Assembly: GCA_002269645.1 (NCBI GenBank)
Contig: NIVC01001299.1
Coordinates: 1-64,000, forward strand
Reading direction: 5' to 3'
Origin: Macrostomum lignano
Lineage: Eukaryota
Length of the DNA: 64,000 nt
Numbering within the stretch: position 1 is the first letter of the stretch; every line of letters starts with the position of its first letter. This document shows positions 11,140 through 57,557 of the stretch, piece by piece. A program made the position numbers and the translations under genes. Below the pieces are notes generated by a model. The model did not search any database. It worked only from the letters and a program-made list of their open reading frames with translations, and was not told where the DNA came from.

Positions 11140-12695
11140 AGGAGGATTGTTAGATGTTCAAAAAGGATTAACAAGCTTACCACCAATCTTTACTACTGGT
11201 AAATATACAGGGGAACTACACCTACCATCAATGAACTTCACAGGTTAACCCGTGGCCTGAGTGTAGAAGCAAAGCTACTGCTAGTCACTATTAGTGGCGA
11301 TGTCTCCAAATTGCGTGAAACCCGTCATACAGCTTCAAGTACCACTTCAATTGAGAAATCTTTTGAAGGAACAGAGGTAACTCCTCTTCCCAAAGGTAAA
11401 AAGCTTGAAGACACGGTGGCAATGCGCAGCCAAGCTCCTAAGTATTTTAAATATAAGGAGAAGGTTCAGAGAGCAGACGGAGATGGGCGGTAATTATCGC
11501 CGCTTAAGGTGTGCTCCAGCCTCTTTCGAAAGATTGAGGGTAAACTACCCGGCACTCGCTTAGATTTGAGATTAAATCCTGATGACACCCAAAAGCCGAT
11601 TCAATTCCAATAAATGGGATTGATTGGTTAGCATACTATCACGACTTAGCATATAGAGATGCTGACAAGAACCCGCCCGAGGAAGCATTAAGATTAAAAC
11701 ATGAAGCCGATCAAAAAATGATTCAAGGATTAGATAACTTGCAGGGATTATCGGTAGGGCAAAGATTAACTAGGTGGATGGTTAAAAAAATTCTACAATC
11801 TAAAGTTAAATTTGGTTTAGGAATTAATTACAACCAACATGGTAATAATTGTGTCGAATGTTTGTTATTAAGTGGTAGTGGGCTAAGTTATGATAAGGCT
11901 AAGGTTCTTCATAAAGAATATCGAAAACCTAAATTTTATAGAAAAATCATGAACTTCAAAAAGAATGAAATTTGGTATGCTGATTTAATGTCGATGCCGA
12001 ACGAAAGAGGATATAAATATATCTTAACCATATTAGATGGTTTTACTCGATACGCGTGGGCTGTTCCTTTGAAATCCAAAAAAGGAGAGGATGTTGCTGC
12101 TGCTTTTAGAAGTCTTGGAGAAAAAAGCGAACGTTTGTGTGTTGACGAAGGAAAAGAATTTTACAATCCTCATATGTATAAATTATATCATTTTGAAAAA
12201 GGACAAGAAAGGAAAAAAGACGCGAATGGGGAGTATATTAATAAAATTTATTCTATTTATGGAGAGAGTAAAAACGCATTAATAGAAAGATTTAATAGAA
12301 CTTTAGGTAAGAAATTATGGTTTCAGTTTAGTCTTAATGGTAACCAAAAATGGGTAAAAATATTACCAGACGTAGTGAAAGATTATAACAATTCATATCA
12401 TTCGGCGATAAAGATGACTCCTCAACAAGCTTATAACAATCCTGAAAACGTTAAAGTTACTTTTGGAAAATTTGAAAAAAATAAAAAGAAATCTTTTAAG
12501 GTTGGTGATTCTGTTTATATCTATAAATGGAAAGATAAGTTTGAAAAAGGAAGAAAAGGATATTGGAAGATAAGTGAGAAATTTACTATCAGTAAAGTTT
12601 TAAATACCAATCCTACAACCTATATAATTGCTGATAAGGACGGTGAAGAAATATTGGGTTCGTTTTATGAGAACCAACTAATATCAGCGAACTAA
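11087..12695 (+). CDS. Parvovirus-type PLA2 domain (PLA2X) fused to retroviral-type (rve) integrase; exons 11087-11245 and 11548-12695, with one -1 frameshift at ~11590
   Basis: After intron removal: GELHLPSMNFTG|PGTRLDLRL..PINGIDWLAYYHDLAY..EADQKM, in frame with integrase WYADL / LCVDEGKEFYN / IERFNRTL (DDE) and a C-terminal FKVGD..W....F.I domain. Confidence 0.9.
11093..11126 (+). repeat. 30-bp double-hairpin element in the HNH 3' end / PLA2X 5' end overlap
   Basis: AACC-GAAC GAA GTTC-GCG-TTCC TTC GGAA-C-GATC; both stems covary relative to the polB copy. Confidence 0.8.
11246..11547 (+). ncRNA. Group I self-splicing intron (IC1-like, with P5abc), 302 nt
   Basis: P1 CAGGU/GCCUG with U.G at the 5' splice site; P3 UGUCUCC(11301-07)/GGAGAUG(11479-85); P4 UGCGUG(11312-17)/UGCGCA(11423-28); P7 GAGCA(11471-75)/UGCUC(11512-16) with bulged A and G-C guanosine site; J8/7 UAAGGUG; P9 with GAAA loop; P9.0 AG/CU; P10 with the CCCGG exon start. 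Removal restores FTG-PGT. Confidence 0.93.
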
Positions 12696-13315: not shown

Positions 13316-13588
13316 AGTAGTAGTATAGAAAAAGACGCTTCTAGATCAGACCTTATTTTAATGGCCGTTTGTAAGGTCTTAAGAGGGGGGACGCGAGGGG
13401 GGTGTTGGGGAGTGTTTGGAAGTGTTGGGAAGTGATTTTTATTGTTAGGGGTGATTATGGGTGATTAGATGTGTTAAGGGTGTTTAGATGTGTTTTTTTA
13501 TTTACCCCCCGTGTCCCCCCTCTAGACCCTTAAAACGGTCATTAAAAAAGTGCTCTGGGTCTAGAAGCGTCTTTTTATATACTACTAC
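13316..13588. repeat. Polinton terminus with internal inverted repeat (AGTAGTAGT...ACTACTAC, ~85-90-bp imperfect arms)
   Basis: 13316 AGTAGTAGTATAGAAAAAGACGCTTCTAGA... is the reverse complement of ...TCTAGAAGCGTCTTTTTATATACTACTAC 13588; similarity continues to the G6/C6 runs; GT-rich spacer. Confidence 0.85.
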
Positions 13589-15349
13589 GGTAAATAGTTT
13601 TTGAATTTGTAAAATTCCAGGACACCTTCTTTTCAATGTGTTTTTTTCTTCACATTGTTGATATATTTCTGTTAAGTAATTACTTTGAGGTTAAATAAAA
13701 CCTTGCATTCTAATATTTTTGTCCGACTATGGGTCTAGTCGAACTTTATTCACTTTTAAGTTTTCAAAAGTCTGTTGTTTGTAGATATAAAATTAGTTGA
13801 AGTTTTTTAATAAAGAAAGGCCATCTGGCTGGGGTTTTATTTTGCCACACTTAAAGACACGGCGGCCGTGTCTATATCCAAAAAACTTATAGAAATGGTG
13901 ACCGTGTCTCTGATGCTGATTAGATCCATACTTATAGGTCTAAACAAGGGCAATATAGCTAATTGGTTAAAATACTAAAAAGGTAAAAAAGCAATGGAAA
14001 TTTTAGTCAAGATTTAGAATATGAGATGGGCCTAAGCCTCTTTCTTTACCGAAAATTTATAAAACTTTAATGCATTTTGAATTTTGCAAATCTAAGAAAA
14101 ACTTTTTGTCCTAAATAGTCAAGAAAAATAATAGGCAGTTGTTATTCGTCCTGTGACCAGAAAAATAGCTATTTGTCATTTGTCTACTTAAATTACTATA
14201 TACAAGCGTTTTATTTTAAAGTATTTGTTAAGTGATTAACATTCTAGAGCTTTTTCCTATCTTAATTAATCTTTTGTTTTACTTAGTAAGCCTAGGATAT
14301 GTATATCTATGTATATATACATGATTAACTCACCTAAAAATTTTACTTGCACATTGACTACATGATAAGTGAAACTTCTCATTATTCAGTTTGATTTTTA
14401 TACCTTCTTACACCTTGTTATCCTCCATGCGACCATGCGCTTTGCCTTATAAAAAGGTGCATAGCATAAAAGGGTATAAGCTATACAAGACAGGAAGCAG
14501 TCAGACTAGGGCCTAAGTGTAGACTAGATATATACTGATAAAACAACATATTAATCAAGATGCGAGTAAGAAACCTTTAAAATCCAAAAAAATCACTAAC
14601 ATATATAAGAAGTACTATCCATTTACCCAAACAAATAAAAAATTGGCTTTTTGTCCAGTATAACAACCAGATGAATAGTGAAATGGCTATGTATCCTGTA
14701 ACTAGATGAATAACTACATTGCTATTTGTTTAGTCACTAGACAAATACCAATTTCCAAAATAATATAATTAGACATTAATTCTAGGCAAGGAGAAGCATC
14801 CTTGTTTGAGCTTCAAATCAGCCTCAACCTTTACTAGTGCTTTTTCCCCAGATTAATCAATAAAATATTGGGTATATATATTTTATACAGATTCACTAAT
14901 GGTATTATGGTCAGTGTTGTATTTTCATTGGCTATTGGCTTGCTTTACTTCTATAGCCTAAATACAAAATTGAGTCTAGCAACTAGTGAAATGTGGGATG
15001 GCTAGCTTATAAAAGTTTTTTAGACTGACACTTGGACATAACAATTGGTAGATGTTTATACAAGTCTATCTAAGAATTGATTTCTTATATATCACGAAAG
15101 ATGCAACACTAGTGTCAACTTTAAAGCACAAACAGATAACATGCTATTAACATTATGAAACATAAATTAAAAATAATTTTATCTCTATTCTTTTTATGAG
15201 AAGCTAATGTTATACAATATGCTGGTATAGAAAAAAATTATTAAATATCTTTAAATGGCCCTTGTGGTAAGATCCTTTGCTTTGTTAATATTTAATATTT
15301 ATAATATCTAAGCACATTGTTTTATTAGATTAATTTTAATCCATTGTAG

Positions 15350-18276
15350 TCTGTTATCATACCAGTTCACAATGCTGAATCATGGCTTAGTGAAGCCATT
15401 CAATCCGCTGTCAATCAAAACTTTTCTGGCAATTTAGAGATTTCTGTCTACAATGATTCTAGTTCTGTAAGTTTTTTCATGTCATTACATCTTATAATAT
15501 AGATGTAATTAATTTATAATTTAATCTATTGTCAATGTTATTTTTTAATACACAAACTAGGATAGCAGCGCCAACATCTTGAACAATTTAAAACAGGAAT
15601 TGTCACAAAAAGTGTACAATTTTGTCATATCTGGACACAATGGTAAAGCAAGAGGCTGTGGATATGCCAAAAATTGTGCTGTAGCTCAGTCTTCTGGAGA
15701 ATATCTCTGCTTTTTAGATGCTGTAAGTGGGCCTTTGTGTTACAGAATTTCAAGTATTTTGTGTGTTAAACATAAAAATATTTTATAATCTTTGTAAATA
15801 TTTTCAGGATGATGTCATGCTGCCTCACCGGATTGCTGAACAACTTTCTCTAGCAGTGTCACTGAAAAACAAACATACTGTGAGCTACTGTCTACTGAAG
15901 TTATTTTACTTTTCTTTTTTACATATTGTCATTATCTAAGGGTGTGGCCTGTCATAGTATCCTAGAAATATTTGTATTGTTATTTAGCGTATTTTTCCCA
16001 AATTTCTACTGTAAGTAGAGTAGTCATTTAAAATTCAATATTAGTATTTTTTACCAGAATGTTTTATATTTCTACTGTTAGTACAGTATAAAGAGAACAA
16101 TAGTTATTAATTATTTTTTGTCGCTCAAATATTAATTGATAATTTAAATGTTATAAAAACGTTTATTGCCCCCCCCCAAAATATTCACTAAGATTGTCGG
16201 CAGTCAGTTTCACCGTAAGCCTGACGGTTCCACAGCGCGATTCACAGCCTGGGCCAATCAGCTGACTCCTGTGCAGCTGGTGACTCAGGTGTACACTTCT
16301 CACGGACCCACCGTGATCATGCCAACTTGGTTCATGCATCGATCGGTATTTGATCGTGTGGGAGGCTTCAATCAGTCTGCAGCCAGGGGCTTTCCGGAGG
16401 ATTTGGAGTTTTTCTTCAAGCATCTTGACTGCGGCGGTGGTGTGGCAAGAGTTGACGCCGATCTGCTCATGTACAGATACCACCCAGCTGCCACCACCTT
16501 CTCCGTGCACGAGTGAGCTCTGATTGTGCAGCATTGATAACAACACTGAGAATCGCCTTTAAACCACCCTGAGAATCGCCCCTAAATGACCCTGAGAATC
16601 GCCCCTAAATGACCCTGAGAATCGCCCCTAAATGACCCCGAGAATCGCCCCTAAACCACCCTGAGAATCGCCCCTAAACCACCCTGAGAATCGCCCCTAA
16701 ATGACCCTGAGAATCGCCCCTAAATGACCCTGAGAATCGCCCCTAAACCACCCTGAGAATCGCCCCTAAATGACCCTGAGAATCGCCCCTAAATGACCCT
16801 GAGAATCGCCCCTAAACCACCCTGAGAATCGCACCTAAACCACCCTGAGAATCGCACCTAAACCACCCTGAGAATCGCCTCCAAGCCACCCTGAGAATCG
16901 CCCCTAAATGACCCTGAGAATCGCCCCTAAATGACCCTGAGAATCGCCCCTAAACCACCCTGAGAATCGCACCTAAACCACCCTGAGAATCGCCTCTAAG
17001 CCACCCTGAGAATCGCCCCTGAACCACACTGAGAATCGCCCCTAAACCACCCTGAGAATCGCACCTAAACCACCCTGAGAATCGCACCTAAACCACACTG
17101 AGAATCGCCCCTGAACCACACTGAGAATCGCCCTGAACCACACTGAGAATCGCCCCTGAACCACACTGAGAATCGCCCCTGAACCACACTGAGAATCGCC
17201 CTGAAACACACTGAGAATCGCCCCTGAACCACACTGAGAATCGCCCTGAACCACACTGAGAATCGCCCCTGAACCACACTGAGAATCGCCCTGAACCACA
17301 CTGAGAATCGCCCCTGAACCACATTGAGAATCGCCCCTGAACCACACTTAGAATCGCCCTGAACCACACTTAGAATCGCCCTGAACCACACTGAGAATCG
17401 CCCCTGAACCACACTGAGAATCGCCCCTGAACCACACTGAGAATCGCCCCTGAGCCACTGTAAAAATCGCCCTTAACCACTGCGCTTTTCGCGCGCAACT
17501 ATAGGAGCGCAATATTCCGTCTGCGCATGGATCGGCTTGTTGCCAGGGTGTTGCCAGGCTGGCCCAGCTTCAGTGTGTGGAATGCCGGCAAGCAGGGCCG
17601 CAGGTTCTACCGAGCCCTGCCGCCCGACCATCGACGGAAAGTGGCGGCCTTCTGCGATGTGGATCCTAAGAAGATTCAGCTGGGGTTTTACACCTTTGAG
17701 GAGAGCTCAGTGAGTGCTTCTGCCACATCCTCAGTTGCTGGGCCACCGGCCCCCCAGATCCTCAGTTGCTGGGCCACCAGCCTCCCAGATCCTCAGTTGC
17801 TGGGCCACCAGCCTCCCAGATCCTCAGTTGCTGGGCTACCAGCCTCCCAGATCCTCAGTTGCTGGGCCACCAGCCTCCCAGATCCTCAGTTGCTGGGCTA
17901 CCAGCCTCCCAGATCTTCAGTTGCTGGGCTACCAGCCTCCCAGATCCTCAGTTGCTGAGCCACCAGCCTCCCAGATCCTCAGTTGCTGGGCCACCAGCCT
18001 CCCAGATCCTCAGTTGCTGGGCCACCAGCCTCCCAGATCCTCAGTTGCTCCTCAGACTGAACATTCAGGCCACTCCTTGAACTCTCCCTGAATTCCACCG
18101 CCCGCCTCCACCCACTGCAGCAGCGGCCGAAGCCCCGCATTCCAATCGTTCATTTCTCGACAGTTAAGCCGCCGTTAATCATCTGCGCGAAGTTGGACCT
18201 CACCGGAGGTCAGCTGGAATCCAATTTAGACTCTCTTGGACTCACTGAAGGCGTTGACTACTACTGGTTTAGCTAA
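15350..18276 (+). CDS. B3GNTL1: GT2 glycosyltransferase B3GNTL1/QTGAL orthologue; exons 15350-15466, 15561-15722, 15808-15879, 16193-16512, 17505-17709, 18121-18276; start exon not located
   Basis: [82 protein letters not shown]; all GT-AG junctions keep frame. Confidence 0.93.
16540..17480. repeat. Intronic minisatellite, 20-21-bp unit CCACMCTGAGAATCGCCCCTRAA-like
   Basis: Directly visible tandem array. Confidence 0.95.
17727..18052. repeat. Intronic minisatellite, ~31-bp unit CCTCAGTTGCTGGGCCACCAGCCTCCCAGAT
   Basis: Directly visible tandem array. Confidence 0.95.
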
Positions 18277-18689
18277 GTATAGTAGCAGTAGTAGGTGTAG
18301 CAATTTATGTAGCTGTTTTTCTCTTTATGCTTGTAATTACTGTAGACTTGGCCAAAGTGCTTGGTAAGGTTTTTATTTTATTGTAAAGACAACCAGTATT
18401 TAATAATAGCAAGTTTTAAATTTATCAAAATAAAAGCGTCTTATTGCAGTCGATAAGCCATCCTCCACAGAGAATGCACAGGTTCTGTACGGTACTGAAA
18501 AACTAGTTTTGCGTTTTTTACCTCTTTTATTTGTTTTACATTTGAAGTGAGGCGGCGATTTAGTCGTATTGAGACTAAATTCTAGTTGTAGAGACTAGAT
18601 CTATGTCTAAAGGTTGAGAGTAGATGAATTAGTGGACTCTGGAGAATCGATCTAATTTAATGGAGTGGAGGTGGAGTGGATCCAGTTTG

Positions 18690-19330
18690 GGAGAATAGAA
18701 CTAATGGGGGAGAGTAGATCTAATTCTGGAGAATAGATCTAATGGGGTAGAGTAGATCTATTTTTGGAGAATAGATCTAATGGGGTAGAGTAGATATAAT
18801 TTTTGAGAATAGATCTAATGGGGGAGAGTAGATATAATTCAGGAGAACAGATCTAATGGGGTAGAGTAGATCTAATTCGGGAGAATAGATCTAATAGGGC
18901 AGAGTAGATATAATTCAGGAGAACAGATCTAATGGGGTAGAGTAGATATAATTTGGGAGAATAGATCTAATGGGGGAGAGTAGATATAATTTGGGAGAAT
19001 AGATCTAATGGATTAGAGTAGATATAATTTTGGAGAATAGATCTAATGGGGTAGAGTAGATATAATTTTGGAGAATAGATCTAATGGGGTAGAGTAGATA
19101 TAATTTTGGAGAATAGATCTAATGGGGTAAAGTAGATCTAATTTTGGAGAATAGATCTAATGGATTAGAGTAGATATAATTTTGGATAATAGATCTAATA
19201 GGGTAAAGTAGATATAATTCTGGAGAATAGAAGACCATTTTTAGGATAATGGGTTAAATGGGAGGAGAGTAGATCTAATGGGGTATAGTATATCTAATTC
19301 GGGAGAACAGATGTAATGAGGTAGAGTAGA
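18690..19330. repeat. Intergenic minisatellite, ~38-bp dimeric unit (GGAGAATAGATCTAATGGGGTAGAGTAGATATAATTTT)
   Basis: Directly visible tandem array. Confidence 0.9.
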
Positions 19331-19547
19331 TGTAAAAGTGAAGAAGATCTATTTGGGAGGACTAGTTTTGTTGATGGATTCTATTAAATCTAAAGTTGAA
19401 TCAACTCAAGAGGAAGAGTTTGGATGTCTTGTTTAAGAGTAGAATTGTGGTCGTAAAGAAGTACATTTTAGAGAAATGTTGACATAAACTTATAAAATTA
19501 CAAGCTAAAACACTTGCAGACAACTGAGCTGTCTTCTCCATTCTTTA

Positions 19548-22434
19548 ATGTCGCAATCAGTCAGCGGTTGTCAAGCGGTTGCTAAGGCGAAAAAGTCTGT
19601 GGCGGTGGTTGGCGCTGGCGCTGCAGGCCTGGCCGTTGCGGCCACTCTGAGACGCAGCTGCTTGGTGACCGTGTTCGAGCGGAGTTCAGATTTTGTTGGT
19701 GGCGTGTGGAACTACAGCTCAGACCGGAACGGAGGTCCCATGTACTGTCGGTTGAGGACTAACCTGCCTAAGGAGATCATGGCCTATCCTGACTGGGAGT
19801 GGCGCCGACCAGCCGGTGTCAGCTTTGTGGATCACGATAGCGTGCTCGAGTATTTGAGGTCTTATTGCTATGACCAGGTGAGGGCTGCGTGAGAAACAGC
19901 AGGACATGATAAGAAATGATAGCACGAGATGAAAATTGATATGACATGTGAGAGGATGAGAATCGATATATGAGAGGATGAGAATAGATATCGGAGGATG
20001 AGAAATAATATGAGAGGATGAGAATCGTTATGAGAGGATGAGAATTGGTATGGGAGTCTGACAAACTTTATGGGAGGATGAGAATCGATATGAGAGAACG
20101 AGAATCAATATGAGATAAAAAAGAATCGATATGAGATGACGAGAATCGATATGAGATGTGTTGAGTGAAGGAAACTCCTGCTGTAAAGTACAAAGCCAGT
20201 TAATATTTCAGTAGAAGACCTGTATTCCCCTCATTCCTCTGTTTCAGGGCCTAGATAAGCACATTCTATTCGGCCAAGAAGTACTTTCGGTTAGTCAAAG
20301 TGCATCCATCGATGACACTTCACCAACTGACACCGGCAGTAGGTCTTGGATAGTACAGACCAGTCGCAGTGGTCCTCGGACATTTGATGCAGTGGTTCTA
20401 GCGAATGGTCACTATGCTAAACCCATGTTGCCCCGGCTGCCAGGTATTGAGAATGTGCCTTCTGGGTTGGTCAGTCATAGCTGCACTTATCGAAGGGCTG
20501 AAGATTTTAAGGTGGGTTTTAAAGCTGAAGTTTTGATTCTCTTTTTGATTACACTGCTTAGCCGTTTTGCTTAGATTTTAGCCTTGAGCCTCAATAAGAC
20601 TCGCCCTTCTCCTACCACAAAATCGCCATTAATCCTCCACAAGAATTATCCTTAATCCACTCTAAGAATCGCCAATTATCCACCCTAAGAATCGCCATGA
20701 ATCCACTCAAAGAATCGCCCTTAATCCACCACAAGAATTTTTCCTTAACGAGGAATCGCTATTAATCCAACATAAATAAGAATCGCCATTAATCCACCAC
20801 AAGAATCGCCATTAATGCTCCATAAAAATCGTTATTAATCAACCACAAGAATTGCCATTAATCCACCCTAAGAATCGCCAATGACACCCCTCCACAAGAA
20901 TTGCCATTAATCCACCCTAAGAATCGCCAATGACCCCCCTCCACAAGAATTGCCATTAATCCACCCTAAGAATCGCCAATGACACCCCTCCACAAGAATT
21001 GCCATTAATCCACCCTAAGAATCGCCAATGACACCCCTCCACAAGAATTGCCATTAATCCACCCTAAGAATCGCCAATGACCCCCTCCACAAGAATTGCC
21101 ATTAATCCACCCTAAGAATCGCCAATGACACCCCTCCACAAGAATTGCCATTAATCCACCCTAAGAATCGCCAATGACACCCCTCCACAAGAATTGCCAT
21201 TAATCCACCCTAAGAATCGCCAATGACACCCCTCACAAGAATTGCCATTAATCCACCAAAGAATCGCCAATGACCCCCCCCCCCCACAAGAATTGTCCTT
21301 AATCCACCAGAGGAATCGCTATTAATCCAACATAAATAAAAATCGATAAAAAACTATAATCCACCATAATTGAGTCTCCCTCAATCCACCCTAAGAATCG
21401 CCAATAATCCCTCACAAGAATTGCGATCAATTAATCCACCGTGAGAATCGTCATTAATCCACCACAAAATCGCCATTAATCCACCACAAGAATCGCCAAT
21501 AATCCCCCACAAGAATTGCCATTAGTCCACCCTAAGAATCACCAGTAATCCCCCACAAGAATCGCCATTAGAGCACCATAAGAATCGCCATTAATCCATC
21601 GCAAGAATCGCCACTAATCCACCCTGAGAATTGCTCTAACATTACATAGTTCCCCGAAAGTTCTACAAAAGTACAATCCAAACCAAAATTCCCTCAACCC
21701 GTCAGGACAAAGTTGTGGCACTCCTTGGTGCGGCCTCCAGCGGCCAGGACATCGCCCTTGAACTGACCTCATCGGCCGAACACGTCTACCTGTGCCACCG
21801 TGGTCCCAGATTACAGTCAGCGCTTCCAAAGAACCTTACAGAGTTGTACGCCATGGATAGTGTCAACTTTGACGCTAATAACAATCAATTTCATATTTTC
21901 GTATCGACTGATGATTCTTCATCAGCAATTGGAAAAGTGCAAGTCGATCACGTGATGTTCTGCACAGGTTACGATTATAATTTTCCATTTCTAGCCAGCG
22001 AGCTGACCAGGCCAAGTCACGTGCCCAACCTGTACATGCAGGTGGCCCACTGCACTCTGCAGGGTCTGTTCTTCGTAGGCCTGTGCACTCATGTGGTGCC
22101 ATTCCCGCAGTTTCATCTGCAATCCAAACTCATTGAAGCAATTCTGCTTGGCCAGCTAAAACTGCCTGACGATGCTGAATCGACTAGTCTGAGAGATGAA
22201 GCTGAGAAGCTGGCTAGCGGTGTGCCTGCAAGGCATTTGCATTTGCTGGGCGATGATCAATGGGATTATAATGATCAATTGGCCGATTTGGCTGGCTGCC
22301 AAAGGTTTCCTGTCGTGATGAGGCTTATCTACGACGATGTGAGGCTGGAAAGAAAACTGAGATTAGTTGATTTCAGGCAATGGGCTTACAGTATTACTGG
22401 GCCTGACAGCTTTGAGAAGCGGTTTGTGAGCTGA
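19548..22434 (+). CDS. Flavin-containing monooxygenase (FMO GS-OX/SNO-like); exons 19548-19877, 20248-20511, 21706-22434
   Basis: GAGAAG FAD motif, GGVW, LRTNLPKEIM.YPD, ANGHY, SHS..YR, GAASSGQD NADPH motif, CTGYDYNFPFL; phase-0 GT-AG introns. Confidence 0.93.
19915..20160. repeat. Degenerate 20-bp minisatellite (GAGAATCGATATGAGAGGAT)
   Basis: Visible in FMO intron 1. Confidence 0.85.
20600..21630. repeat. 20-bp-based minisatellite (CCACAAGAATYGCCATTAAT), higher-order in its centre
   Basis: Visible in FMO intron 2. Confidence 0.92.
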
Positions 22435-22461
22435 TGCTTTGAACTAATTGAACTGAACTTC

Positions 22462-23035
22462 TGCTCTTACTGACATCCTTACTGACTCCTCTGACGTCCT
22501 TATTGACTCTTCTGACATCCTTACTGACTCCTCTGACGTCATTACTGACTCCTCTGACGTCCTTATTGACTCTTCTGACATCCTTACTGGTTCTTCTGAC
22601 ATCCTTAAACTGACTCTTCTGACATCCTTACTGACTCTTCTGACATCCTTAAACTGACTCTTCTGACATCCTTACTGACTCTTCTGACATCCTTAAACTG
22701 ACTCTTCTGACATCCTTTCTGACTCTTCTGACATCCTTACTGACTCTTCTGACATCCTTAAACTGATTCTTCTGACATCCTTTCTGACTCTTCTGACATC
22801 CTTACTGACTCTTCTGACATCCTTAAACTGATTCTTCTGACATCCTTTCTGACTCTTCTGACATCCTTAAACTGATTCTTCTGACATCCTTTCTGACTCT
22901 TCTGACATCCTTAAACTGACTCTTCTGACATCCTTTCTGACTCTTCTGACATCCTTACTGACTCTTCTGACATCCTTAAACTGATTCTTCTGACATCCTT
23001 TCTGACTCTTCTGACATCCTAACTGACTCTTCTGT
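22462..23035. repeat. 21-bp minisatellite (ACTGACTCTTCTGACATCCTT)
   Basis: Directly visible tandem array. Confidence 0.95.
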
Positions 23036-23444
23036 CTCCCTTGAGACTTTCTGAGTTACTAAAATTCTGCTGCTCATTTGATAGCAGAAGATTTCTGACA
23101 TCGCGATGTTCCTACTGACAATCGTGTAGTCTTTTTAGAAATTATTATTGATTTTTCAAGGCTTTATATGTCTTCTACTTGTAAAGCAAAACCCCTGTTC
23201 TTTAGATGAATAAATGAAATATTAGTCCGATATTATTAACACTTTATTTTCAAGACTTACATTTAATTGATGCCTAAGTAAATTGATATTGTGCCTTTCT
23301 ATGTGTACATGAGAGAATTGTTAGACAGATGTCCAGTATTGAAACCTGATTAATTGAACACGCGGTTTTTTCCACAGAATTCTGTGGTTTTTTCTGTTGA
23401 TTATTTTTATTGCGTTTCTGTGAGCTTTTGGGAGTATTGGGTGA

Positions 23445-24245
23445 GGCAGAGGGTGAGATTGATAGTTTAGAGGGTGAGATTGATAGTCGAGAGGTGAGAT
23501 TGATAGTCGAGAGGGTGAGATTGATAGTCGAGAGAGTGAGATTGATAATCGAATGGTGAGATTAATAGTTACAGGGTGAGATTAGTAGTCGAGAGGGTGA
23601 GATTGATAATCGAATGGTGAGATTAATAGTTACAGGGTGAGATTGATACATGTAGTTGAAGGTTGAGATTTATATTCGGATAACGAGATTGATTGAGATT
23701 AGGGTGTGATAGTCGGGAGAGTGAGATTGATAGCCGGGAGAGTGAGATTGATAGCCGGGAGAGTGAGATTGATAGTCGGGAGGGTGAGATTGATAGTCGG
23801 AGAGTGGATTCAAACTCGGAGGGTGAGATTGATAGTTGAAGGTTGAGATTGATAGTCGGGAGGGTGAGATTGATAGTCGGGAGGGTGAGATTGAGAGTCG
23901 GAAGGGTGAGATTGATAGTCGGGACGGTGAGATTGATAGTCGAGAGGTGATATTGATAGTCGAGAGGGTGAGATTGATAGTCGAGAGGGTGAGATTGATA
24001 GTCGAGAGGGTGAGATTGATAGTCGAGAGGTGAGATTGATAGTTTAGAGGGTGAGATTGATAGTTTAGAGGGTGAGATTGATAGTCGAGAGGGTGAGATT
24101 GATAGTCGGGAGGGTGAGATTGATAGTCGGAAGGGTGAGATTGATAGTCGGAAGGGTGAGATTGATAGTCGGGAGGGTGAGATTGATAGTCGGGAGGGTG
24201 AGATTGATAGTCGGGAGGGTGAGATTGATAGTCGGGAGGGTAAGA
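23445..24245. repeat. 21-bp minisatellite (GAGGGTGAGATTGATAGTCGG)
   Basis: Directly visible tandem array. Confidence 0.95.
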
Positions 24246-24319
24246 TCGAGAGTCCAGCCATCTAGTAGTGAAAAGATCCCCATTCACCAAACGTTCCCCA
24301 TCTGCAGCCCCTGTCCACC

Positions 24320-27159
24320 ATGCCGGGTCACCGCTTCGACTTGGCCATCGTAGGCGGCGGTATTGTTGGCGCTGCCACAGCCCGTGAGGTGACGAAACGG
24401 TGGCCAAAACTTCGCTGCCTCCTACTGGAGAAGGAGTCCGGCTTGGCCCGGCATCAGAGCGGCCACAACTCCGGCGTGATTCACGCGGTAATTTATTATC
24501 AGCCTGGCAGTTTGAAAGCTAAGCTGTGCGTTCGCGGAATGCGGCTCATGTACGACTATTGCGATGCTAGACGGCTGCCGTGTAAGAAGGTTGGCAAACT
24601 CATTGTGGCCACTAGGGAGGACGAGTTTGATAGGTGAGTATCTTAGGTCTGAGATCTGAGAATATCATTTTACAGTCTGAGAGTCTCTCGTGCGATACCT
24701 GAAGAATCTCACTCCATGCTTAGGAATTCTAACTCCGTTCCTAAAGAATCTCACCCTATTTCTAAATAATCTCACCCCACCACTAAAAATGTCATCCTAT
24801 CCCTAAAGAATCTCACCCTATCCCTAAAAATCCTAAAAAATCTCACCCCATCCCTTGAGGATCTGACCCAATTCCTAAAGAATCTCACCCAGTCCCTGAA
24901 GAATCTCACCATTTCTGTGAATTCCCACCCTGTCCCTAAGAAATTTCACTCCATCCCTAAAGAATCTCACCCCATCCCTTGAGAATCTCACCCCATCCCT
25001 AAAGAATTTCACCATATCCCTAAAAAGTCTCACCCTATCTTAAATAATCTTACCCCATCCCTAAAGAATCTCACCCCATCCCTTGAGAATCTCACCCCAT
25101 CCCTAAAGAATTTCACCCTATCCCTAAAAAGTCTCACCCTATCCCTAAAGAATCTCACCCCATCTCTAAAGAATCTCACCCTATCTCTAAGGAATCTCAC
25201 CCCATCCCTAAAGAATTTCACCCTATCCCTAAAAAGTCTCACCCTATCTTAAAGAATCTTACCCTATTCCTAAAGAATCTCACCCCGTCCTTAAAGAATC
25301 TCACCCCATACCTAAAGAATTTCACCCTATCCCTAAAAAATCTCACTCCATCCCTAAAGAATCTCACCCAATTTCTATAAACTCCCACCCTGTCCCTAAG
25401 AAACCTCACCCTGTTCCTAAGAAATCTCACCACGTCACTAAGAAATCTCACCCTATCTCTAGTGCATATTAATTAATTAAGTGATTAAATATGATTTAAA
25501 TAATTATAAATCATATTCGCTACATTCCTACTTGGAAAATTAGTAGCATAATACGCACATTGGTTATACTATTTGTTATAATAAAGAACCTATATTTTCT
25601 CAGGCTAGCAGAATTAAAACGCCGCGGCGAGGAGAATCGAGTCCCGGACCTTCGTTTGCTGACCAACCAATCGGAGATTCTCGCCGTAGAGCCCAACTGC
25701 ACCGGCGGCCTTCGGGCTTTGCACTCGCCGCACACGGGTATCGCCGACTTTGGCGCGGTGACCCGCTCTTTCGGGGACGATTTTCTGGCCTCTGGCGGCG
25801 AAGTTCGTCTGGGCTTTGAACTCGCTTCCGTCCGCTTCGATTCTGCGCAGCTGTCGGAACCGAATGGTTTGTGCTTTATTGTCTACACTTTGCTACTTAT
25901 TTTAGCGGTGTTAGTAGGCTGGTTGCGGAATTGTCAGTAAAATTGTTAACAATCTCTCTCCTCGCCCTTACAGCCCAAAATTTCACCCTATCCCTTGAGA
26001 ATCTCACCACATCCTTTTGAGAATCTCACCACATCCCTTGGGAATCTCCCCACATCCCTTTGAGAATCTCACCACATATATTTGAGAATATCATTACAAT
26101 CCCTTTAAGAATCTCATCAAATCCCATAAGAATCTCACCACATCCCATAAGAATCTCACCACATCCCTTGAGAATCTCACCGCATCCCTTGAGAATCTCA
26201 CCGCATCCCTTGAGAATCTCACCGCATCCCTTGAGAATCTCACCGCATCCCTTGAGAATCTCACCGCATCCCTTGAGAATCTCACCACATCCCTTGAGAA
26301 TCTCACCACATCCATTTGAGAATCTCACCACATCCCTTGAGAATCTCACCACATCCATTTGAGAATCTCACCACATCCCTTGAGAATCTCATTTCGTTCT
26401 TTAAGAATCTCAGTCATCCATATCCGTCCGGCAGGCTACCCGTTGACTCTTCAACCCGCCACGGGCAAATCGGTCAGCTGCCGACGCCTCATCACATGCG
26501 CCGGCCTGCACAGCGACCGCGTCGCCGCCATGACTCTAACCAAGGATGACGCATCATCGGATTCTAAGACTGCTCAGTCTCCACCGCCGCCGCCATCTAT
26601 CGTACCATTTCGGGGAGATTATCTGGTCCTTCGTCCTGGCCGAGAGTCGCTAGTCCGTGGCAACATCTACCCAGTGCCCGATCCCAGATTCCCATTCCTG
26701 GGAGTTCATTTCACGCCCAGAATTGACGGCTCAGTGTGGCTGGGGCCCAACGCTGTATTGGCTTTCAAACGAGAAGGCTACGGTCTGTGGGATATCAGTG
26801 CCAGAGATTTGGCCGATGCGTTGAGCAAGCCGGGCCTGTGGAGACTACTAGCAGCCAATATTGGTCCGGGACTGCGAGAACTTCGTCGGGTTATCGACAC
26901 TGGCGCAATGGTGGAAGAATTACGACGATTTGTGCCGTCGTTGAGTCGAGACGACGTGGCTAGAGGTCCTAGCGGGGTTCGAGCTCAGGCCCTTGCCGAT
27001 ACGGGCGCTTTGGTTGACGATTTTGTTATTGTAGGCGATTCCGAGGGTCGTGTGATGCACGTCTGTAATGCGCCCTCGCCTGCTGCCACGTCGTCGTTGG
27101 CGATTGCCGAGTTTGTGGCTGATAGGGCGAATGAAAAACTGGGTTTGGGGCTTCTGTAA
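24320..27159 (+). CDS. L2HGDH: L-2-hydroxyglutarate dehydrogenase; exons 24320-24633, 25604-25866, 26435-27159
   Basis: IVGGGIVG, HQSGHNSGVIHA..YY.PGSLKAKLCVRG, IYPVPDPRFPFLGVHFTPR..G.VWLGPNAV, GVRAQAL, NAPSPAATSSLAIA. Confidence 0.95.
24720..25460. repeat. 21-bp minisatellite (AAAGAATCTCACCCCATCCCT)
   Basis: Visible in L2HGDH intron 1. Confidence 0.93.
25978..26395. repeat. 21-bp minisatellite (GAGAATCTCACCACATCCCTT)
   Basis: Visible in L2HGDH intron 2. Confidence 0.93.
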
Positions 27160-28155
27160 TTTTTTAATAAGTAATTCAACTTTATAAAACAACAATTTTT
27201 TTTGCGCCTGCGCCTGTTGTGTCAATTTTAAATTTTGGGGTTGATCAAGTTTATCGATTTTCATTTTAAGCTAGTCTAGACGCAGCTGAGCGCGTGAGGT
27301 GTCGCTAACAGTTTTCTGTAACACTTTCTTCCCCCATCTCCTCACTTTATCGATTTGTTGCCTCTTCTCAGAGGGAGGGGTGGTGGCTAGTGCTTATCAG
27401 TTTTCCAGTCCGTCCCTCACCCTCTTTTTTTCCCGCTGACCCAGGCTTCGTTTTATCGATTCTGGCCTTGCCCGTTTGTGCGTGAGATTGGTTGTTGTTT
27501 TAACGGTTTTCAAGTCCGTCCCTTACCCCCGCCTCCTCCACTAACTTTTCTACCCCTCCCCCACTATTGCTTTGTTGCCTCTTCGCGCGCGCGGGGGAGG
27601 GGTGGTCGCTAGTGCTTATCAGATTTCCAGTCCGTCCCTCACCCCCCTTTTCCACCCCTCCTCGGCCCGCCGACCCATGCCCTGTTTTATCGATTTTGGC
27701 TTTGCCCCACGGTTCCAATCGTGCGTTTTTGAAGGTTGGCTTGGTGATCTATTAATTTTCCATTCTTTCCTCCATCAAAATACCCTGCACTAGCCTCACT
27801 TTATCGCCTGTTGGTGTGCAGCAGCTTTCTTTCAACTCTGCGTAAATCCTGGGTCCTGACTCGGTGTTAATGACCAAACAACTTTTTTGATTAGCTATAT
27901 TTTGCTAATAGAAGTATTTCAGAATAAGTGCTGAAAGACTAGCTAGCTCGCATTAGTTAACCATGATTCAAATCTTAATGATAAATACGATGCATTGTAT
28001 TTTCGTAAATATAAATTAAATAGTTTTGATTTGCTATTAAATTAGAGGAAACTTTTATCGAATTAATTAACTTCCGATAACAACAAATAGGTCGAAGAAG
28101 TGCATTGAAGGATGTCTTAATCTTAATCTTAACTTAATCTTAATCTTAATCTTAA

Positions 28156-30745
28156 TCACAGAACAGGCGGCGGAGGCGGTGGCGGCACCATCGTCAGCAT
28201 TGGATTCCAGCAGTCCTGCCTGTCGTCTCCTCCATAACTGTTGTCGATTTCAAAGTTTTGAGCTTGCCAGTCAGTTCTATCCTGGCGAATAGCCGCTTCT
28301 CGGCTACGTTTTCTAACGCGCCAAATTATTCTAGACGAATACTCGTGGAAAGGTTTAATCAAACGCAAACATCCGGTTGCGCACAAGCGTCTGAAATTGT
28401 GACGAAATCTTGGTACAGTGGCCATGAGCAGCAGAGGACTGGCGCACAGTTGTATCGAAGTCAGCAGTCTGCTCATGTAGAGGTACAACTCGTCATCGAT
28501 CTGATAAACCGATGCTGTTTGATGCTGTTGGCCAAATTTTAGCCAATTCTCTCGCTGTTGCCTCCGCACATGCGGATGAGTGCCAGCTCTCAATAGGTAG
28601 TAGTGCAGGTGCATCAAACAGTTGTACACAGCCGGTAACAGACACAGCAGCGCATAGCCAAAGCAGCAAGCCACCAGTCCTGTCTGTATGCTGCAGTAGA
28701 GCTCCGAATCGATGACGTACTGCAATAATAGCCGCCGCTTTTGCTGCTGCTGCTGCTGATTTCTGCAATTAAAAAATCAATCCATTTTGTCACTACGCTG
28801 AAACTGGTACCGAACCAAGAGCTTTTCGAGTGCTTTGATAGCCGTTGAGGCACTATAGAAAACAGGGAAAAAATAACTGTTGCTGGTTAGACTGTAAATT
28901 AAATTGCTACCATGAAGCACATTTAAAGTGAACGAATCTTTTCTCAGCACCATCTTGAAAACCTTAAAAGCGGTTTTTTCTGAGTATTAAAATTCAGAGC
29001 CTTTGTCACTAGCCCAGGGTTAAGTGATCTATTCATTTAAAATAATCAAAAACTCCCACTTCGTGGGATTCGGATTTGGTCAGGCTTTCTAAAAGCAGAT
29101 AACACAATCTGGTAAACTTCTGGTAAAATTTCGCCGAATCGACTTCGCCAGGCTGCCCACAACCTTTGTGCGAATTAAGGTCTGTTTTTGGGAATTACTG
29201 GACATTTCTTCAAGTCAAAATGTGTTCAAAAGGTCGTACTTACATCGAGACATCATTCCGCAATCGGTTTTTCCAACCGGAAATTAACCAGCACAAACTG
29301 GCCAATGAGAATAGTATTGTCAGCGTCACGGGAATGACGTCACCAACTAGGAGATCGCCTATTGGCCAGAACCAATTGGTGAACGTGTCTGTGATTGGCC
29401 AGCGCTCGGTCCAACCGCAGTGCAGAATTCTATTGGTGGTATCTCCACTGGCTAATGGGCTCTCCGTCACAATCGTGAGAGTCCACAGGTGGTGCGCGTT
29501 GAACAAGACAACCAGCACGCAGGCAAGAATGGTGCTGTTCTTAACCCACTCTCGGGAGTAGCTGTTCACCCGGTCAAATGGTTGGCGCACTAATCGATAA
29601 GTGTCAATCGCCAGTGCCGTTTGTAGCAGAGATTTAAAATGGTACAAGGATGAGTAGGCCAGATTAATCAGCTGGCAACTGGACTCGTCCATCAGAGCCA
29701 GGCTCAGGCTGAGTTTCACGTCCAGGGCCGATTGCATCCACAGGTCGAGGCACCGGCTCCACAGCAGAACCGTGTCTGTGCAGGCCAGAAGCATCAGGTA
29801 GAGACAGACTGGTAGCTGACGCCCGCTGTAGGTGAGGAGCAACCGGCCGGTCAGACAGTTGGTCAGAGTGCCGAAAATCAGCAGTGCCAGAGGCAGGAAG
29901 CAGTCCAGCTGACGAAGAATTTCGCTTGAGTAATTCCCCGTGCATTCAATATCCCAGGCAACGGGCTGATCGGTTGTGGACAATTGGGACGCAGAGGCTG
30001 ATGCTTGAAGCTGGCGTTGCTGCTGCTGCTGCAGGACACTTAAAATTCTGCCTCCGGCTGTTGCGATGTAAAGGAAATTAAAAAGTTCTTTCTTTATGTA
30101 CTGTTAGAATCTTTCACTTTCCTTGTGGGTCTTTTGGTTTTCTCTGCATATGGTCTTTCTCTTCACGACTTTGCATGACTTTATTTTTATTCATGCACTG
30201 TAACTTTCTTTGCTCTCTTCAGTTCAAATCCTCTGTCTAGTTTTTCTCTTTTCCTGAGGCACCCATCTTACTGATACGTGTTACATCTACCATGCAGTCC
30301 TTGGTGCTGACTAATTAAAAAGCATCCCATCAAAAGATAACTCATCACCTTTAATTTGGAAACAAATTTCTTCTATGAGGAGCCGTCGACCTCTTTGATT
30401 TCAAGCAAAGGTGAAATTCAATTATGATGACGGATGCTGTTAGTTCTTACCGCCAGTGGAAGTCAACGAAGCAGCTGACGAGTCATCGAGTCCTTCCTCG
30501 CTGCTACCCTCTGTCCACATGATGCAGCGATAGTCCGTCAGACGGCTCGGGCAGTACTGCGCCAACTTCCCACTCCGATGAAAGAAGCATCCGCTATTGA
30601 TGAAGCTGAACAGACTCCCTCCGGTGATATTTCCGCGTCTACTAGTGTCTCCGTGCAAGCTTTCAGACTCCGACTGCGACTGGGCGCTGATTGTTGAACC
30701 GCTATGGAACCTGACCCTACCGCTTGCGCCGCCGCCCCGAGCCAT
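28156..30745 (-). CDS. Rhodopsin-like (class A) orphan GPCR, 571 aa; exons 30745-30451, 30057-29244, 28762-28156
   Basis: Seven hydrophobic segments; G.LTN (TM1), YL..LA.TD (TM2), C..TM3..IDTY, IP (TM5). Exon phases 1 and 2 match and the total of 1716 nt is divisible by 3. Confidence 0.82.
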
Positions 30746-31394
30746 GTCAATTAGCAGTTCCGATTCTTATAGAATTCAAACTACTCGGTAATAAATAGTT
30801 TTCAATATTGTCTTGAAGTCCCTGGGTTATTGGGGGCACCCTTATTGTAACTTCCGAAATGATTTCTAACAACTGATCCCCAGGTCAGTTTGATTGGTGG
30901 ATGGCTTTTGCAACCAATCGGATTTTGCATTTATCCTGTAATTTCCTTGTAACCCCCCCCCTGCCTCGATGCCCTGTCATGCGTAGCAATGAGGAATGGT
31001 AGCTTGGGAAATTTTGGGGATCTGTCTGCTTTTGAGGGATCGACTTGGCTTGCCTACTAAAGCTTGTCTTGCTGTATGTCTTTAGCAACCTACATGTAAA
31101 TCGGTGAACTTACATGTACATCCTGAGCAACCAGATTGGTGATCCTGGGTCCCATGTCAGGTCCCTGGCAACCAGAATTGTGTCCCTCGATCCCGTTCGT
31201 GACCCTAGAAACCTGATTAAAGCCCATGGATCCGAAATTGGCGTTTTTGACTACTAATGCCAAATTAGCGTCCTTAGAAACCCAGTTAGTGCCTCTAGAT
31301 CAAGGGGTCGGCAAACATATTTACCCCAAGGGCTAGATAAGGAAACCAGCGGGCCATATGAGAGAGGAAAAGAGAGGGAATACGAGCTCATAGA

Positions 31395-31600
31395 GAAGGA
31401 GAGACGAGAACAGAGGCGAGAGATGGGATGAGAGAAAGGCAAAAGATAAGAGGAGAAAAGAGGAGAGAGAGGGGAGGGGGAGGAAAGGGTAGAGGGAGAA
31501 AGGGGAGAGTGGAGGAAGAGAAGAGAGGGAATAGGAGAGGGCAGAGAGGAGAGGAGGAGAGAAGAGCGAGAGCTGAAGACAGACATGAGAGGATAGAGAG
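31395..31600. repeat. AG-rich low-complexity tract
   Basis: Near-pure purine stretch. Confidence 0.85.
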
Positions 31601-32528
31601 GCTTCGCAGGCTGCACGTGGCCCGCGGGCTGGATTTCGCCGACCCCTGCAGTCTAGATCCAAAATCGGCATCTCTAAATCCTGAATCGGGTTCACTTGGC
31701 AACTAAGTTGAACCTTGGTTTTAGTAATTATCGATGGAAACAGAAACCGACCGAAATGTCCGAAAGGCATGCAAATTGGACACAAAAATGTCTGTAGTTT
31801 TGCTACATGTGCATGGGTACATCCAATTCCCCACTCTGTAATATGAAGTAGATATACGATTGCTAAAGATATTTGGAACGTTTTGGTAACCACATTTAGA
31901 ATCTTCCAGCACAGAAAATTGACAACGCCTCTATCGGTTGTACCTCAGCTATTTGCCGCACGAAAGATAAGCAAAAAAGAAACGGTTAGTTATCAATTAA
32001 GCTTCTTTTTCTATCAGTCTGTCCAACTTTATGATGCATAACCTACATGTATAACCCTAGTCAGAGATTTCTACGCCTTAGAACTTGGCCGATAAAATCC
32101 TATCCAATTGACTGCTTGGAACCGATAAAAGTTCCCTTCTTCCGCGCCGCGGCGGTGTCGTCTTTAAGTCAAATTATAACTGCGATGCGCATGTAAATTG
32201 ACTTTCCTGGTAGTATAGCGCGCGAGCCTGTCGTATTCTGACTTCGATCGCGTCTGGAAGAGAAAGTTGCTATCGATTGATTATCCAGTTTTGTCCAAGA
32301 GCAGCCTTGCTATCCCCTTTCCCTAGTTAACGCTAATCGGGTTTCCTGTCTTGAGAAGATTTACAGCTCCCGATAAGCGGCCAAGTTTTGCTACACGGCT
32401 AAGGAAGTTCGAAAAGTGCTTTTAACGTTAATTAGAATTTATGCTCAGCTGGTTGGTTTACCCATGGAGGCCTCCTAATCGGTGAATACAACGATGGATG
32501 ACAACGTTAGACTTGCCACATCGGCCAA

Positions 32529-33410
32529 CAGGGGGGTGTCGCCATGGATTTTATGCTTAGGTGGGGGAACAAACCTAAGAATTTTACATGACTAAATTCC
32601 TACATTACTTTTTGGGAATCGGTGTTGTTACTCATTTTAACGCCACAGGCACTCATTTTAACGCCACAGGCACTCGTTTTGGCGCCGCAGGCACTCATTT
32701 TGGCGCTACATGCACTCATTTTGGCGCCGCAGGCACTCATTTTGGCGCTACATGCACTCATTTTGGCGCCGCAGGCACTCATTTTGGCGCTGTAGGCACT
32801 TATTTTGGCGCCGCAGGCACTCATTTTGGCGCCGCAGGCACTCATTTTGGCACCGCAGGCAGTCACTTATTTTGGCGCCGCAGGCAGTCACTTATTTTGG
32901 CGCCGCAGGCAGTCACTTATTTTGGCGCCGCAGGCAGTCACTTATTTTGGCGCCGCAGGCACTCATTTTGGCGCCGCAGGCAGTCACTTATTTTGGCGCC
33001 GCAGGCACTCATTTTGGCGCCGCAGGCACTCATTTTGGCGCCGCAGGCAGTCACTTATTTTGGCGCCGCAGGCACTCATTTTGGCGCCGCAGGCAGTCAC
33101 TTATTTTGGCGCCGCCGGCAGTCACTTATTTTGGCGCCGCTGGCACTCATTTTAGCGCCGCAGGCAGTCACTTATTTTGGCGCCGCAGGCACTCATTTTG
33201 GCGCCGCAGGCAGTCACTTATTTTGGCGCCGCCGGCAGTCACTTATTTTGGCGCCGCAGGCAGTCACTTATTTTGGCGCCGCTGGCACTCATTTTAGCGC
33301 CGCAGGCAGTCACTTATTTTGGCGCCGCTGGCACTCATTTTAGCGCCGCAGGCAGTCACTTATTTTGGCGCCGCAGGCACTCATTTTAGCGCCGAAGGCA
33401 ATCATTTTGT
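32529..33410 (+). mobile_element. Second, 3'-truncated copy of the minisatellite-bearing MITE-like family
   Basis: Starts CAGGGGGGTGTCGCCATGGATTTTATG like 49607; same 21-bp unit plus a 25-bp derivative. Confidence 0.55.
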
Positions 33411-34558: not shown

Positions 34559-34694
34559 CCAATCACAGCGCGACGACTGACGGGTGACGTCATCAGGGCT
34601 GCTCGGTAACGGAGGTCAAGGACAAGTCACGGCTTTCAAAATCACGCATCACGCTTACGTGATCGCGTGACGCGTGATCTCAGGGCTATAAATA
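34559..34694 (+). promoter_or_regulatory. Candidate Pol II promoter: CCAAT (34559), CRE TGACGTCA (34585-92), TATAAATA (34687-94)
   Basis: Canonical motifs in canonical order within a CpG-rich patch about 2.3 kb upstream of the espin ATG. Confidence 0.45.
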
Positions 34695-37026: not shown

Positions 37027-44060
<7,034 letters not shown>

Positions 44061-56995: not shown

Positions 56996-57557
56996 GGCTT
57001 TAGCACCAGGGGCTTTAGCACCAGGGGCGCCAGCTCCAGGGGCGCCAGCTCCAGGGGCGCCAGCTCCAGGGGCGCCAGCTCCAGGGGCGCCAGCTCCAGG
57101 GGCGCCAGCTCCAGGGGCGCCAGCTCCAGGGGCGCCAGCTCCAGGGGCGCCAGCTCCAGGGGCGCCAGCTCCAGGGGCGCCAGCTCCAGGGGCGCCAGCT
57201 CCAGGGGCGCCAGCTCCAGGGGCGCCAGCTCCAGGGGCGCCAGCTCCAGGGGCGCCAGCTCCAGGGGCGCCAGCTCCAGGGGCGCCAGCTCCAGGGGCGC
57301 CAGCTCCAGGGGCGCCAGCTCCAGGGGCGCCAGCTCCAGGGGCGCCAGCTCCAGGGGCGCCAGCTCCAGGGGCGCCAGCTCCAGGGGCGCCAGCTCCAGG
57401 GGCGCCAGCTCCATGGGCGCCAGCTCCAGGGGCGCCAGCTCCAGGGGCGCCAGCTCCAGGGGCGCCAGCTCCAGGGGCGCCAGCTCCAGGGGCGCCAGCT
57501 CCAGGGGCGCCAGCTCCAGGGGCGCCAGCTCCAGGGGCGCCAGCACCAGGGGCGCCA
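56996..57557. repeat. Highly homogeneous 15-bp minisatellite (AGGGGCGCCAGCTCC)
   Basis: Near-perfect array; starts with two AGGGGCTTTAGCACC-type units. Confidence 0.97.

Follow-up and report, generated by a model that had tools for sequence, protein, structure and literature searches.

We analysed a 64,000-nt stretch of the Macrostomum lignano genome assembly (contig NIVC01001299.1, positions 1 to 64,000, hereafter the window). Bases 1 to ~13,600 hold a Polinton-like element, and the last of its genes encodes a phospholipase A2 (PLA2) domain fused to an rve integrase. This gene is split by an insertion that is the main subject of this report. The two features on which the argument turns are as follows.

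11087..12695, + strand: PLA2-rve integrase fusion gene; exon 1 to 11245, exon 2 from 11548; inferred start at 11087
11246-11547, + strand: intron of 302 nt, with no open reading frame (ORF) inside

The integrase part of the window gene matches rve integrase (PF00665) in Pfam at 8.2e-08. The fusion has 365 homologues, many of which carry both PF00665 and PF08398, the parvovirus-type PLA2. The closest intron-less homologue, P0001 at locus L002, is 70% identical and reads unbroken through the insertion point (...GYNFTGPGTRLELRLNPD... / ...GELHIPGYNFTGPGTRLELRLNPD..., motif NFTGPGTRL). Both this protein and a second intron-less homologue, P0149 at locus L152, have an uninterrupted F-[TA]-G-P-G-T. 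The window gene reads ...GELHLPSMNFTG, followed by 302 nt and then by PGTRLDLRLNPD, with the insertion point between TTCACAGGT and CCCGGCACT. Further, exon 2 begins at this same residue in the tblastn alignments of four more loci, L001, L028, L029, and L030. The unbroken intron-less homologue and the exon 2 start shared by four loci fix the bounds of the intron at exactly 11246-11547. Once the 302 nt between these bounds are excised, the calcium-loop motif of the PLA2 reads as it does in the intron-less homologues. The interrupted motif is presumably the [Y/F]-x-G-x-G calcium-binding loop of parvovirus-type PLA2. A preliminary description, made from the letters of the window, had given the same coordinates and the same splice junction (TTC ACA GGT / CCC GGC ACT, or F-T-G/P-G-T), and the homologues show both to be correct. 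Other splice boundaries were tried and rejected. Those at the U aligned by Rfam, or at the G that ends the Rfam match, give a stop or a three-residue insertion and conflict with the intron-less homologues and with the four same-site introns.

The Rfam model of group I introns, RF00028, matches positions 11237-11538 (+) over its full length (1-253) with 57.8 bits (E 5.6e-14) when an 801-nt stretch, window positions 11000-11800, is scanned. This is the Rfam check that the preliminary description had proposed, and the score lies above the gathering score of 50 bits. Neither the default Rfam scan of the whole 64-kb window nor a 16-kb scan returned an RF00028 match. Since the bit score is independent of the search space, these misses are false negatives of the speed filters. 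An Rfam scan of L027-L030 together was likewise empty although L028 plainly carries the intron, and is thus another filter false negative. The preliminary description had held that the lack of a covariance-model hit would speak against the intron; the default long-window scans, which gave none, would have misfired on exactly this point. Because such scans miss an intron that scores above threshold, group I introns are probably under-counted in eukaryotic assemblies. A hidden Markov model of the intron family described below matches the window intron at E 3e-48, and this is the sole family copy within the window.

Structure and covariation of the intron

The helices of the window intron, all on the + strand, are placed as follows.

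P1, 11241-11247/11253-11259; the 5' strand takes in the last five exon bases
P2, 11263-66/11275-78
P2.1, 11284-89/11293-98
P3, 11301-07/11479-85
P4, 11312-17/11423-28
P5, 11322-26/11415-19
P5a, 11333-39/11404-10, plus a junction helix at 11340-43/11395-98
P5b, 11345-54/11359-68, with a GAAA loop
P5c, 11373-77/11383-87
P6, 11429-31/11463-65
P6a, 11435-38/11457-60
P6b, 11442-46/11450-54
P7, 11469 and 11471-75/11512-17, with a bulge at 11470
P8, 11487-91/11499-503
P9, 11521-27/11532-38, with a GAAA loop, followed by a 9-nt tail at 11539-47

An unconstrained minimum free energy fold of the window intron recovers most of these helices (z = -2.2). The P1-P9 structure, including the P3/P7 pseudoknot, was then used to count pairs on a 40-sequence alignment of the intron family, the relatives having been found with an nhmmer profile; the counts below refer to this alignment except where stated. 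Pairing holds in 87.0% of cells, compared to 36-47% when the partners are slid. Both sides have changed in 61 of the 92 pairs, and none of 500 shuffles reaches any of these measures. The paired fraction is 91.9% for P3, 97-100% for P4, 97.1% for P5a, 100% for P5c, 99-100% for P6 and P6a, 98.9% for P7, 89.5% for P8, and 75.4% for P9, with P5, P5b, and P9 all falling within 75-82%. RNAalifold, applied to the same-site set alone, recovers P5a, P5b, P5c, P6, P7, P8, and P9; here, 32 of the 59 pairs have changed on both sides. These sequence comparisons identify the 302-nt insertion as a true group I intron.

The most informative helix is P7. Most copies have GACUA/UAGUC here, and the window, L001, and three copies of giant-virus type have GAGCA/UGCUC. 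The compensatory change that had been proposed for it is borne out as two covarying pairs (CG in 33 and GC in 6; UA in 35 and CG in 5). All 40 sequences keep the G-C pair of the guanosine site. Outside the bulge, the pair is GC in 22 and AU in 18 with zero mismatches, and the bulged base is A in 22 and C in 18. The similar proposal for P4 comes down to a single double change, which gives a wobble pair (GC 38, UG 1). P10 has only four of six pairs, one position covarying against L001. The preliminary account of the structure is largely right: most of the helices are recovered by the fold, and P3-P9 are supported by covariation. The core is not fully "intact", as one splice-signal nucleotide is substituted (see below). 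P2 and P2.1 are peculiar to the window copy.

The segment CCCAAUGGUAAAAA is conserved in the family, and P5a, P5b with its GAAA loop, and P5c all covary. P9.1 and P9.2 are absent from the window intron, which has only the 9-nt tail after P9, and its P8 and L6b regions are shortened relative to the family. The P5abc layout, the GNRA loop L5b, and the A-rich segment are consistent with subgroup IC1 but do not prove it, as Rfam offers a single model for these introns.

Relatives at the same site and associated nucleases

A related intron lies at the identical codon boundary in four metagenomic Polinton-like loci.

L001: intron of 835 nt with an internal 233-aa ORF; RF00028 at 65.3 bits
L028: intron of 299 nt
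L029 and L030: contigs start inside the intron

The intron-less P0149 (L152) and the intron-plus P0003 (L001) fall into one 90%-identity cluster, so that near-identical alleles differ in whether this site is occupied. The comparison of intron-plus and intron-minus alleles that had been suggested earlier thus yields both kinds; the alleles compared are those of viral relatives rather than of the flatworm. Among intron-plus alleles, the 5' junction can be read in the window, L001, and L028, and in all three exon 1 ends in ACAGGT, whereas the same glycine codon is GGC in the intron-less alleles. This contrast fits either a requirement for the U.G pair of P1 or co-conversion during homing. A further candidate for an interrupted allele, P0019 at L027, was set aside because it has a deletion rather than an intron.

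A motif scan and profile search extended the family to 252 nhmmer matches in 150 loci. Many of these loci are on GVMAG-labelled contigs or on viral contigs of 100-700 kb, mostly of giant-virus size, and none of the family loci found with the profile encodes a PLA2-integrase. The giant-virus-type copies have 57-67% core identity to the window intron and have P5abc, P7, and J8/7 sequence in common with it. The window intron belongs to a large set of compact group I introns with a P5abc extension, which circulate among the giant viruses and the Polinton-like viruses that aquatic microbial eukaryotes harbour. Several contigs have more than one intron in a gene region. In two loci, three or four related group I introns stand within a few kilobases of each other (L003, 130-4472 of a 49-kb contig; L141, 4528-10301 of a 231-kb contig). 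Core identity is 79% between the window and L001 and 74% between L028 and L030. These two same-site pairs are not mutual nearest relatives in the family; a single ancestral insertion is therefore not established, and the PLA2-loop site may have been invaded more than once.

Genes resembling nucleases accompany the intron at this site. In the window, the gene concerned is the following.

10537..11139, + strand: free-standing HNH/endonuclease VII-like ORF, 200 aa; directly upstream of the PLA2-integrase gene and slightly overlapping it; uninterrupted

This ORF matches PHROG 1035 (endonuclease VII) at 3.4e-08 and phrog_2255 (HNH endonuclease) at 4.8e-05, with no match in Pfam, NCBIfam, or PDB, and is a candidate homing endonuclease. 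In L001, the ORF inside the intron (776-1477) is 35% identical (E 1e-11) to a free-standing gene of L151 (8135-8722). The L151 gene carries PF09553 (RE_Eco47II), and the L001 intron ORF has a weak PF09553 match of its own. An Eco47II-like PD-(D/E)XK nuclease is thus free-standing in the L151 element and intron-internal in L001, which fits movement of this nuclease between free-standing and intronic places. In L028, fragmented GIY-YIG ORFs lie just upstream and give weak matches to TIGR01453, "group I intron endonuclease". The presence of three nuclease families around one intron site suggests repeated endonuclease turnover. In its arrangement, the window resembles collaborative homing.

The element, its decay, and its flatworm flank

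The remaining features of the element and its surroundings are listed below.

2..1536, + strand: PolB-like remnant, cut by the window start; blastx to a 773-aa ORF of L151, five high-scoring segment pairs (HSPs) in three frames
6018..6404, - strand: adenain-like cysteine protease candidate; 43% identical to an L151 ORF; uninterrupted
6655..7519, - strand: penton-like (minor capsid) gene; blastx to a 267-aa ORF of L028 in two frames; at least one frameshift
7500..8294, - strand: A32-like packaging ATPase; Pox_A32 at 9.5e-07; uninterrupted; single HSP to the L151 and L028 ATPases
8346..9628, - strand: double jelly-roll (DJR) major capsid protein (MCP) gene; blastx to the L001 MCP in two frames; at least one frameshift
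10117..10509, + strand: conserved element ORF, unassigned; 37% identity to an L002 ORF (blastx)
13317..13590, no strand: imperfect palindrome, 275 nt, past the last element ORF; arms of ~85 nt, short tandem repeats in a G/T-rich centre
15579..64000, no strand: flatworm host flank; ordinary animal gene exons and many minisatellite arrays

The element thus runs from the PolB-like remnant through small ORFs, a fibre-like ORF, and the protease-like, penton-like, A32 ATPase, and DJR capsid genes to the conserved ORF, the HNH-like ORF, and the PLA2-integrase. In L002, the homologue of the conserved ORF directly precedes the PLA2-integrase gene, the HNH homologue lying downstream instead. The capsid assignment comes through the L001 MCP, which matches PF21738 (DJR-like) at 7.4e-12. 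The function of the penton-like gene was assigned solely from its position beside the MCP in L028, with no support in Pfam. The protease candidate has no direct Pfam match, and its L151 counterpart has a weak one to Peptidase_C5 (0.0053). For the PolB-like remnant, no polymerase annotation was obtained from Pfam, PHROGs, PDB, or the homologue search, and it was read as PolB-like from motifs only. The preliminary description had called the host gene a Polinton gene. The rve integrase, the ATPase, and, via its homologue, the MCP support that name; in its strict sense, it requires a protein-primed PolB, for which the remnant gives no confirmation. Phospholipase domains are common in one recognised Maverick-Polinton group (bioRxiv 10.64898/2026.06.19.733378).

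Homologues of the PolB-like fragment at 973-1536 (P0153-P0173) are 116-324 aa long and without Pfam domains, many of them on megabase-scale ENA contigs; they have the look of related elements that decayed in the genomes of other eukaryotes. A 577-aa ORF at 4166-5899 (-), which has no family match, carries tandem repeats of 16 residues (NLKRN.ADSYTKTEVD...) ahead of a C-terminal part free of repeats; it may encode a fibre or spike of the element. A palindrome similar to that at 13317..13590, also starting GTAGTAG, stands beside the PLA2-integrase gene at ~200-370 of L001; such palindromes may mark the end of an element, the junction of terminal repeats, or an origin. A match to MIR868 at the window palindrome was discarded as spurious (40 bits against a gathering score of 200).

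Two nucleotides at group I splice sites are invariant: the U of the U.G pair that ends the 5' exon, and the G with which the intron ends. The window copy has a substitution at one of them, and both are present wherever they can be read in L001, L028, L029, and L030. Other genes of the element are broken as well. The PLA2-integrase gene has one frameshift, in its PLA2 part, and in the PolB-like remnant the frame changes at least four times, with several in-frame stops opposite ordinary residues. The ATPase, protease-like, and HNH-like ORFs are uninterrupted. The breaks follow the pattern of a decaying endogenous copy. The preliminary description had envisaged a self-splicing intron carried into a bilaterian nuclear genome. 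With the substituted splice signal, the frameshift, and the broken MCP, penton-like, and PolB-like genes, that claim is overstated, and the window copy is instead a relic, not a working unit of ribozyme and gene. Given the splice-signal substitution, the frameshift in the host gene, and the three other broken genes, the animal is not expected to obtain a working mRNA by complete splicing of this copy.

Beyond the element, the sequence is that of the flatworm. The GC content is ~45% in the flank and ~32% in the element. A VGLUT/SLC17-like exon at 60652-61536 shares 87% identity with a protein of Macrostomum lignano, and the next matches are all from Platyhelminthes. From these similarities, the host of the element is a Macrostomum-like flatworm, a bilaterian. 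The nuclear bilaterian setting proposed earlier therefore stands insofar as the element and flatworm genes lie on one contig; the contiguity is that of one assembly window. The first host gene past the element shows two exons, 15579-15788 and 17527-17958 (+), with a 23-nt minisatellite between them. By motif reading, they look like exons of a B3GNTL1-like glycosyltransferase. The minisatellites of the flank (16539-17480, 41800-43000, 56880-57620, and others) have periods of 8-26 nt and tens of copies, and some recur at several places, also inverted (51062-51211 versus 56996-57145).

Interpretation and comparison with known systems

We consider it probable that the window holds a true group I intron of viral origin, now a fossil, within a decayed Polinton/Maverick-type copy in a flatworm genome. 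In a functional member of the family, transcription of the host gene would include the intron. P1 would form when an internal guide pairs with the final five bases of the exon (CAGGU) and the first bases of the intron, the U.G pair lying at the splice site. Guanosine would be bound at the invariant G-C pair of P7 next to the bulged base, and the GAAA loops on P5b and P9 would provide tertiary contacts. Excision would then join the F-T-G and P-G-T codons and so restore the calcium-binding loop of a capsid-associated phospholipase. At the DNA level, the intron would have spread in a viral phase by nuclease-driven homing into this highly conserved site. An intron-bearing Polinton/Maverick-type virus would later have integrated into the genome of a Macrostomum-like flatworm and decayed there. 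Catalysis, homing by the nucleases named above, and the order of events are all inferred from sequence.

Several observations weigh against this account. A homologue of the HNH-like ORF, with one internal stop, is also found in the intron-less L002, downstream of the integrase; the link between HNH gene and intron is consequently positional and not exclusive. The nuclease assignments in L001 and L028 lie below curated cut-offs. Some of the frameshifts could be errors of a long-read assembly. Only a single junction between element and host is present, the left end being beyond the window, and a search within the window found no repeat common to the element and the flank. Finally, the nearest relatives of the element all come from environmental metagenomes, not from animals.

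The last three of these points, together with the sharp change in base composition and the lack of a terminal inverted repeat or target duplication in the window, would also suit an element that derives from a virus infecting some protist or food organism of the culture and that became linked with flatworm DNA through misassembly or contamination. We regard such an origin as unlikely. Flatworm exons follow contiguously within ~2 kb, and four genes show a pseudogene-like decay that is unexpected for a replicating exogenous virus. Further, relatives of the PolB-like fragment occur on megabase-scale public contigs, as expected of endogenous copies, and phospholipase-bearing Maverick-Polintons are a recognised group (bioRxiv 10.64898/2026.06.19.733378).

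The intron might, on the other hand, still be active, the copy being transcribed in the flatworm and performing at least part of the chemistry, with the breaks due to assembly errors. Perhaps a nearby alternative 3' site would then give a working or near-working PLA2-integrase mRNA. The core does score above the Rfam cut-off and keeps the invariant guanosine-binding pair, the ATPase, protease-like, and HNH ORFs are unbroken, and the alternative G that ends the Rfam match gives an in-frame product three residues longer. AT-rich long-read assemblies do contain indel errors. The window copy nevertheless differs from all four same-site relatives at one invariant splice-signal nucleotide, its host gene is frameshifted, and at least four frame changes plus stops in the PolB-like remnant exceed what indel errors alone explain. 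In addition, the alternative site lacks P10 support and would put residues into the calcium-binding loop. We therefore give continued activity only a slim chance, although, if true, this would make it the first group I ribozyme in an animal to be at work other than in organelles or ribosomal DNA (rDNA).

A spliceosomal intron, or an insertion with a chance likeness to a group I intron, has next to no probability: the 5' boundary becomes AG|GT if moved by two bases, but no GT...AG pair in the region restores the frame and the candidate at a nearby AG gives an in-frame stop, while chance is ruled out by the covariance-model score for RF00028, the family-wide covariation counts, and the four same-site homologues that tblastn locates in non-animal viral contigs.

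The fossil intron can be compared with several known systems. RF00028 introns have been reported from Polinton-like viruses (PLVs) integrated in protist genomes, in three protist groups only, with Rhodomonas lacustris (cluster C3), Paulinella micropora, and Desmodesmus armatus as hosts, and free-standing genes of GIY-YIG and of HNH type occur in PLVs as well (PMC12220804, 2025). The window intron is like these in matching the same covariance model, in having an endogenous PLV/Polinton-type host, in its length (302 nt, compared to 309-376 nt), and in the presence of GIY-YIG- or HNH-type genes for putative homing endonucleases in the same elements. Unlike the protist introns, which interrupt a short unannotated gene upstream of the MCP, it lies in a flatworm and between PLA2 calcium-loop codons. 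The preliminary description did not recall such an intron having been described. That needs narrowing, since RF00028 introns in endogenous protist PLVs are published (PMC12220804) and the family comprises more than 250 viral copies; the animal context is what stands, and our literature search found no paper linking group I introns with animal Polintons or Macrostomum. The window thus extends the 2025 report on endogenous protist PLVs to a flatworm.

Among giant viruses, chloroviruses are an example of group I intron carriers. Endonuclease-bearing group I introns also occur in the RNA polymerase genes of Bodo saltans virus (PMC5871332). Unlike these introns of Nucleocytoviricota, which occupy other genes, the window intron is in a small integrating element in an animal genome. 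One large intron family is nonetheless common to giant viruses and Polinton-like viruses, which share host cells.

Collaborative homing pairs an ORF-less group I intron with an adjacent free-standing endonuclease, as PMC11296320 relates from Bonocora & Shub 2009, and the psbA intron of cyanophages with F-CphI is given there as an instance (Zeng et al. 2009). As far as that account goes, the window is similar in having an ORF-less intron with an adjoining HNH-type gene, and the internal ORF of L001 would correspond to the proposed next stage. It departs from such pairs in that the HNH homologue also stands beside the intron-less L002 gene, on the other side and with a stop. The PLA2 calcium-loop site makes the turnover of introns and endonucleases in eukaryotic viruses open to sequence comparison.

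To our knowledge, animal group I introns are known only from mitochondria. They occur in cnidarians, sponges, and placozoans, often with homing endonuclease ORFs. Those introns are organellar and belong to early-branching animals, whereas the window intron is nuclear and in a bilaterian, a comparison of setting rather than of sequences. According to reviews, all known nuclear group I introns, in turn, interrupt rRNA genes of eukaryotic microorganisms (PMC3679873, PMC9223047). With the nuclear rDNA introns (Tetrahymena-type IC1, and IE), the window intron shares the general core, a P5abc-type extension with a GAAA loop, and the nuclear location. A likeness to the Tetrahymena intron itself is presumed. 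Unlike the rDNA introns, the window intron interrupts a viral element's protein-coding gene, and does so in an animal. A group I ribozyme carried along by an integrating Polinton-type virus would have a route into the nuclear genome of an animal. Compared to all of these systems, the window intron occupies a new site, the PLA2 loop of an integrase fusion, in a new host context, a flatworm nuclear contig.

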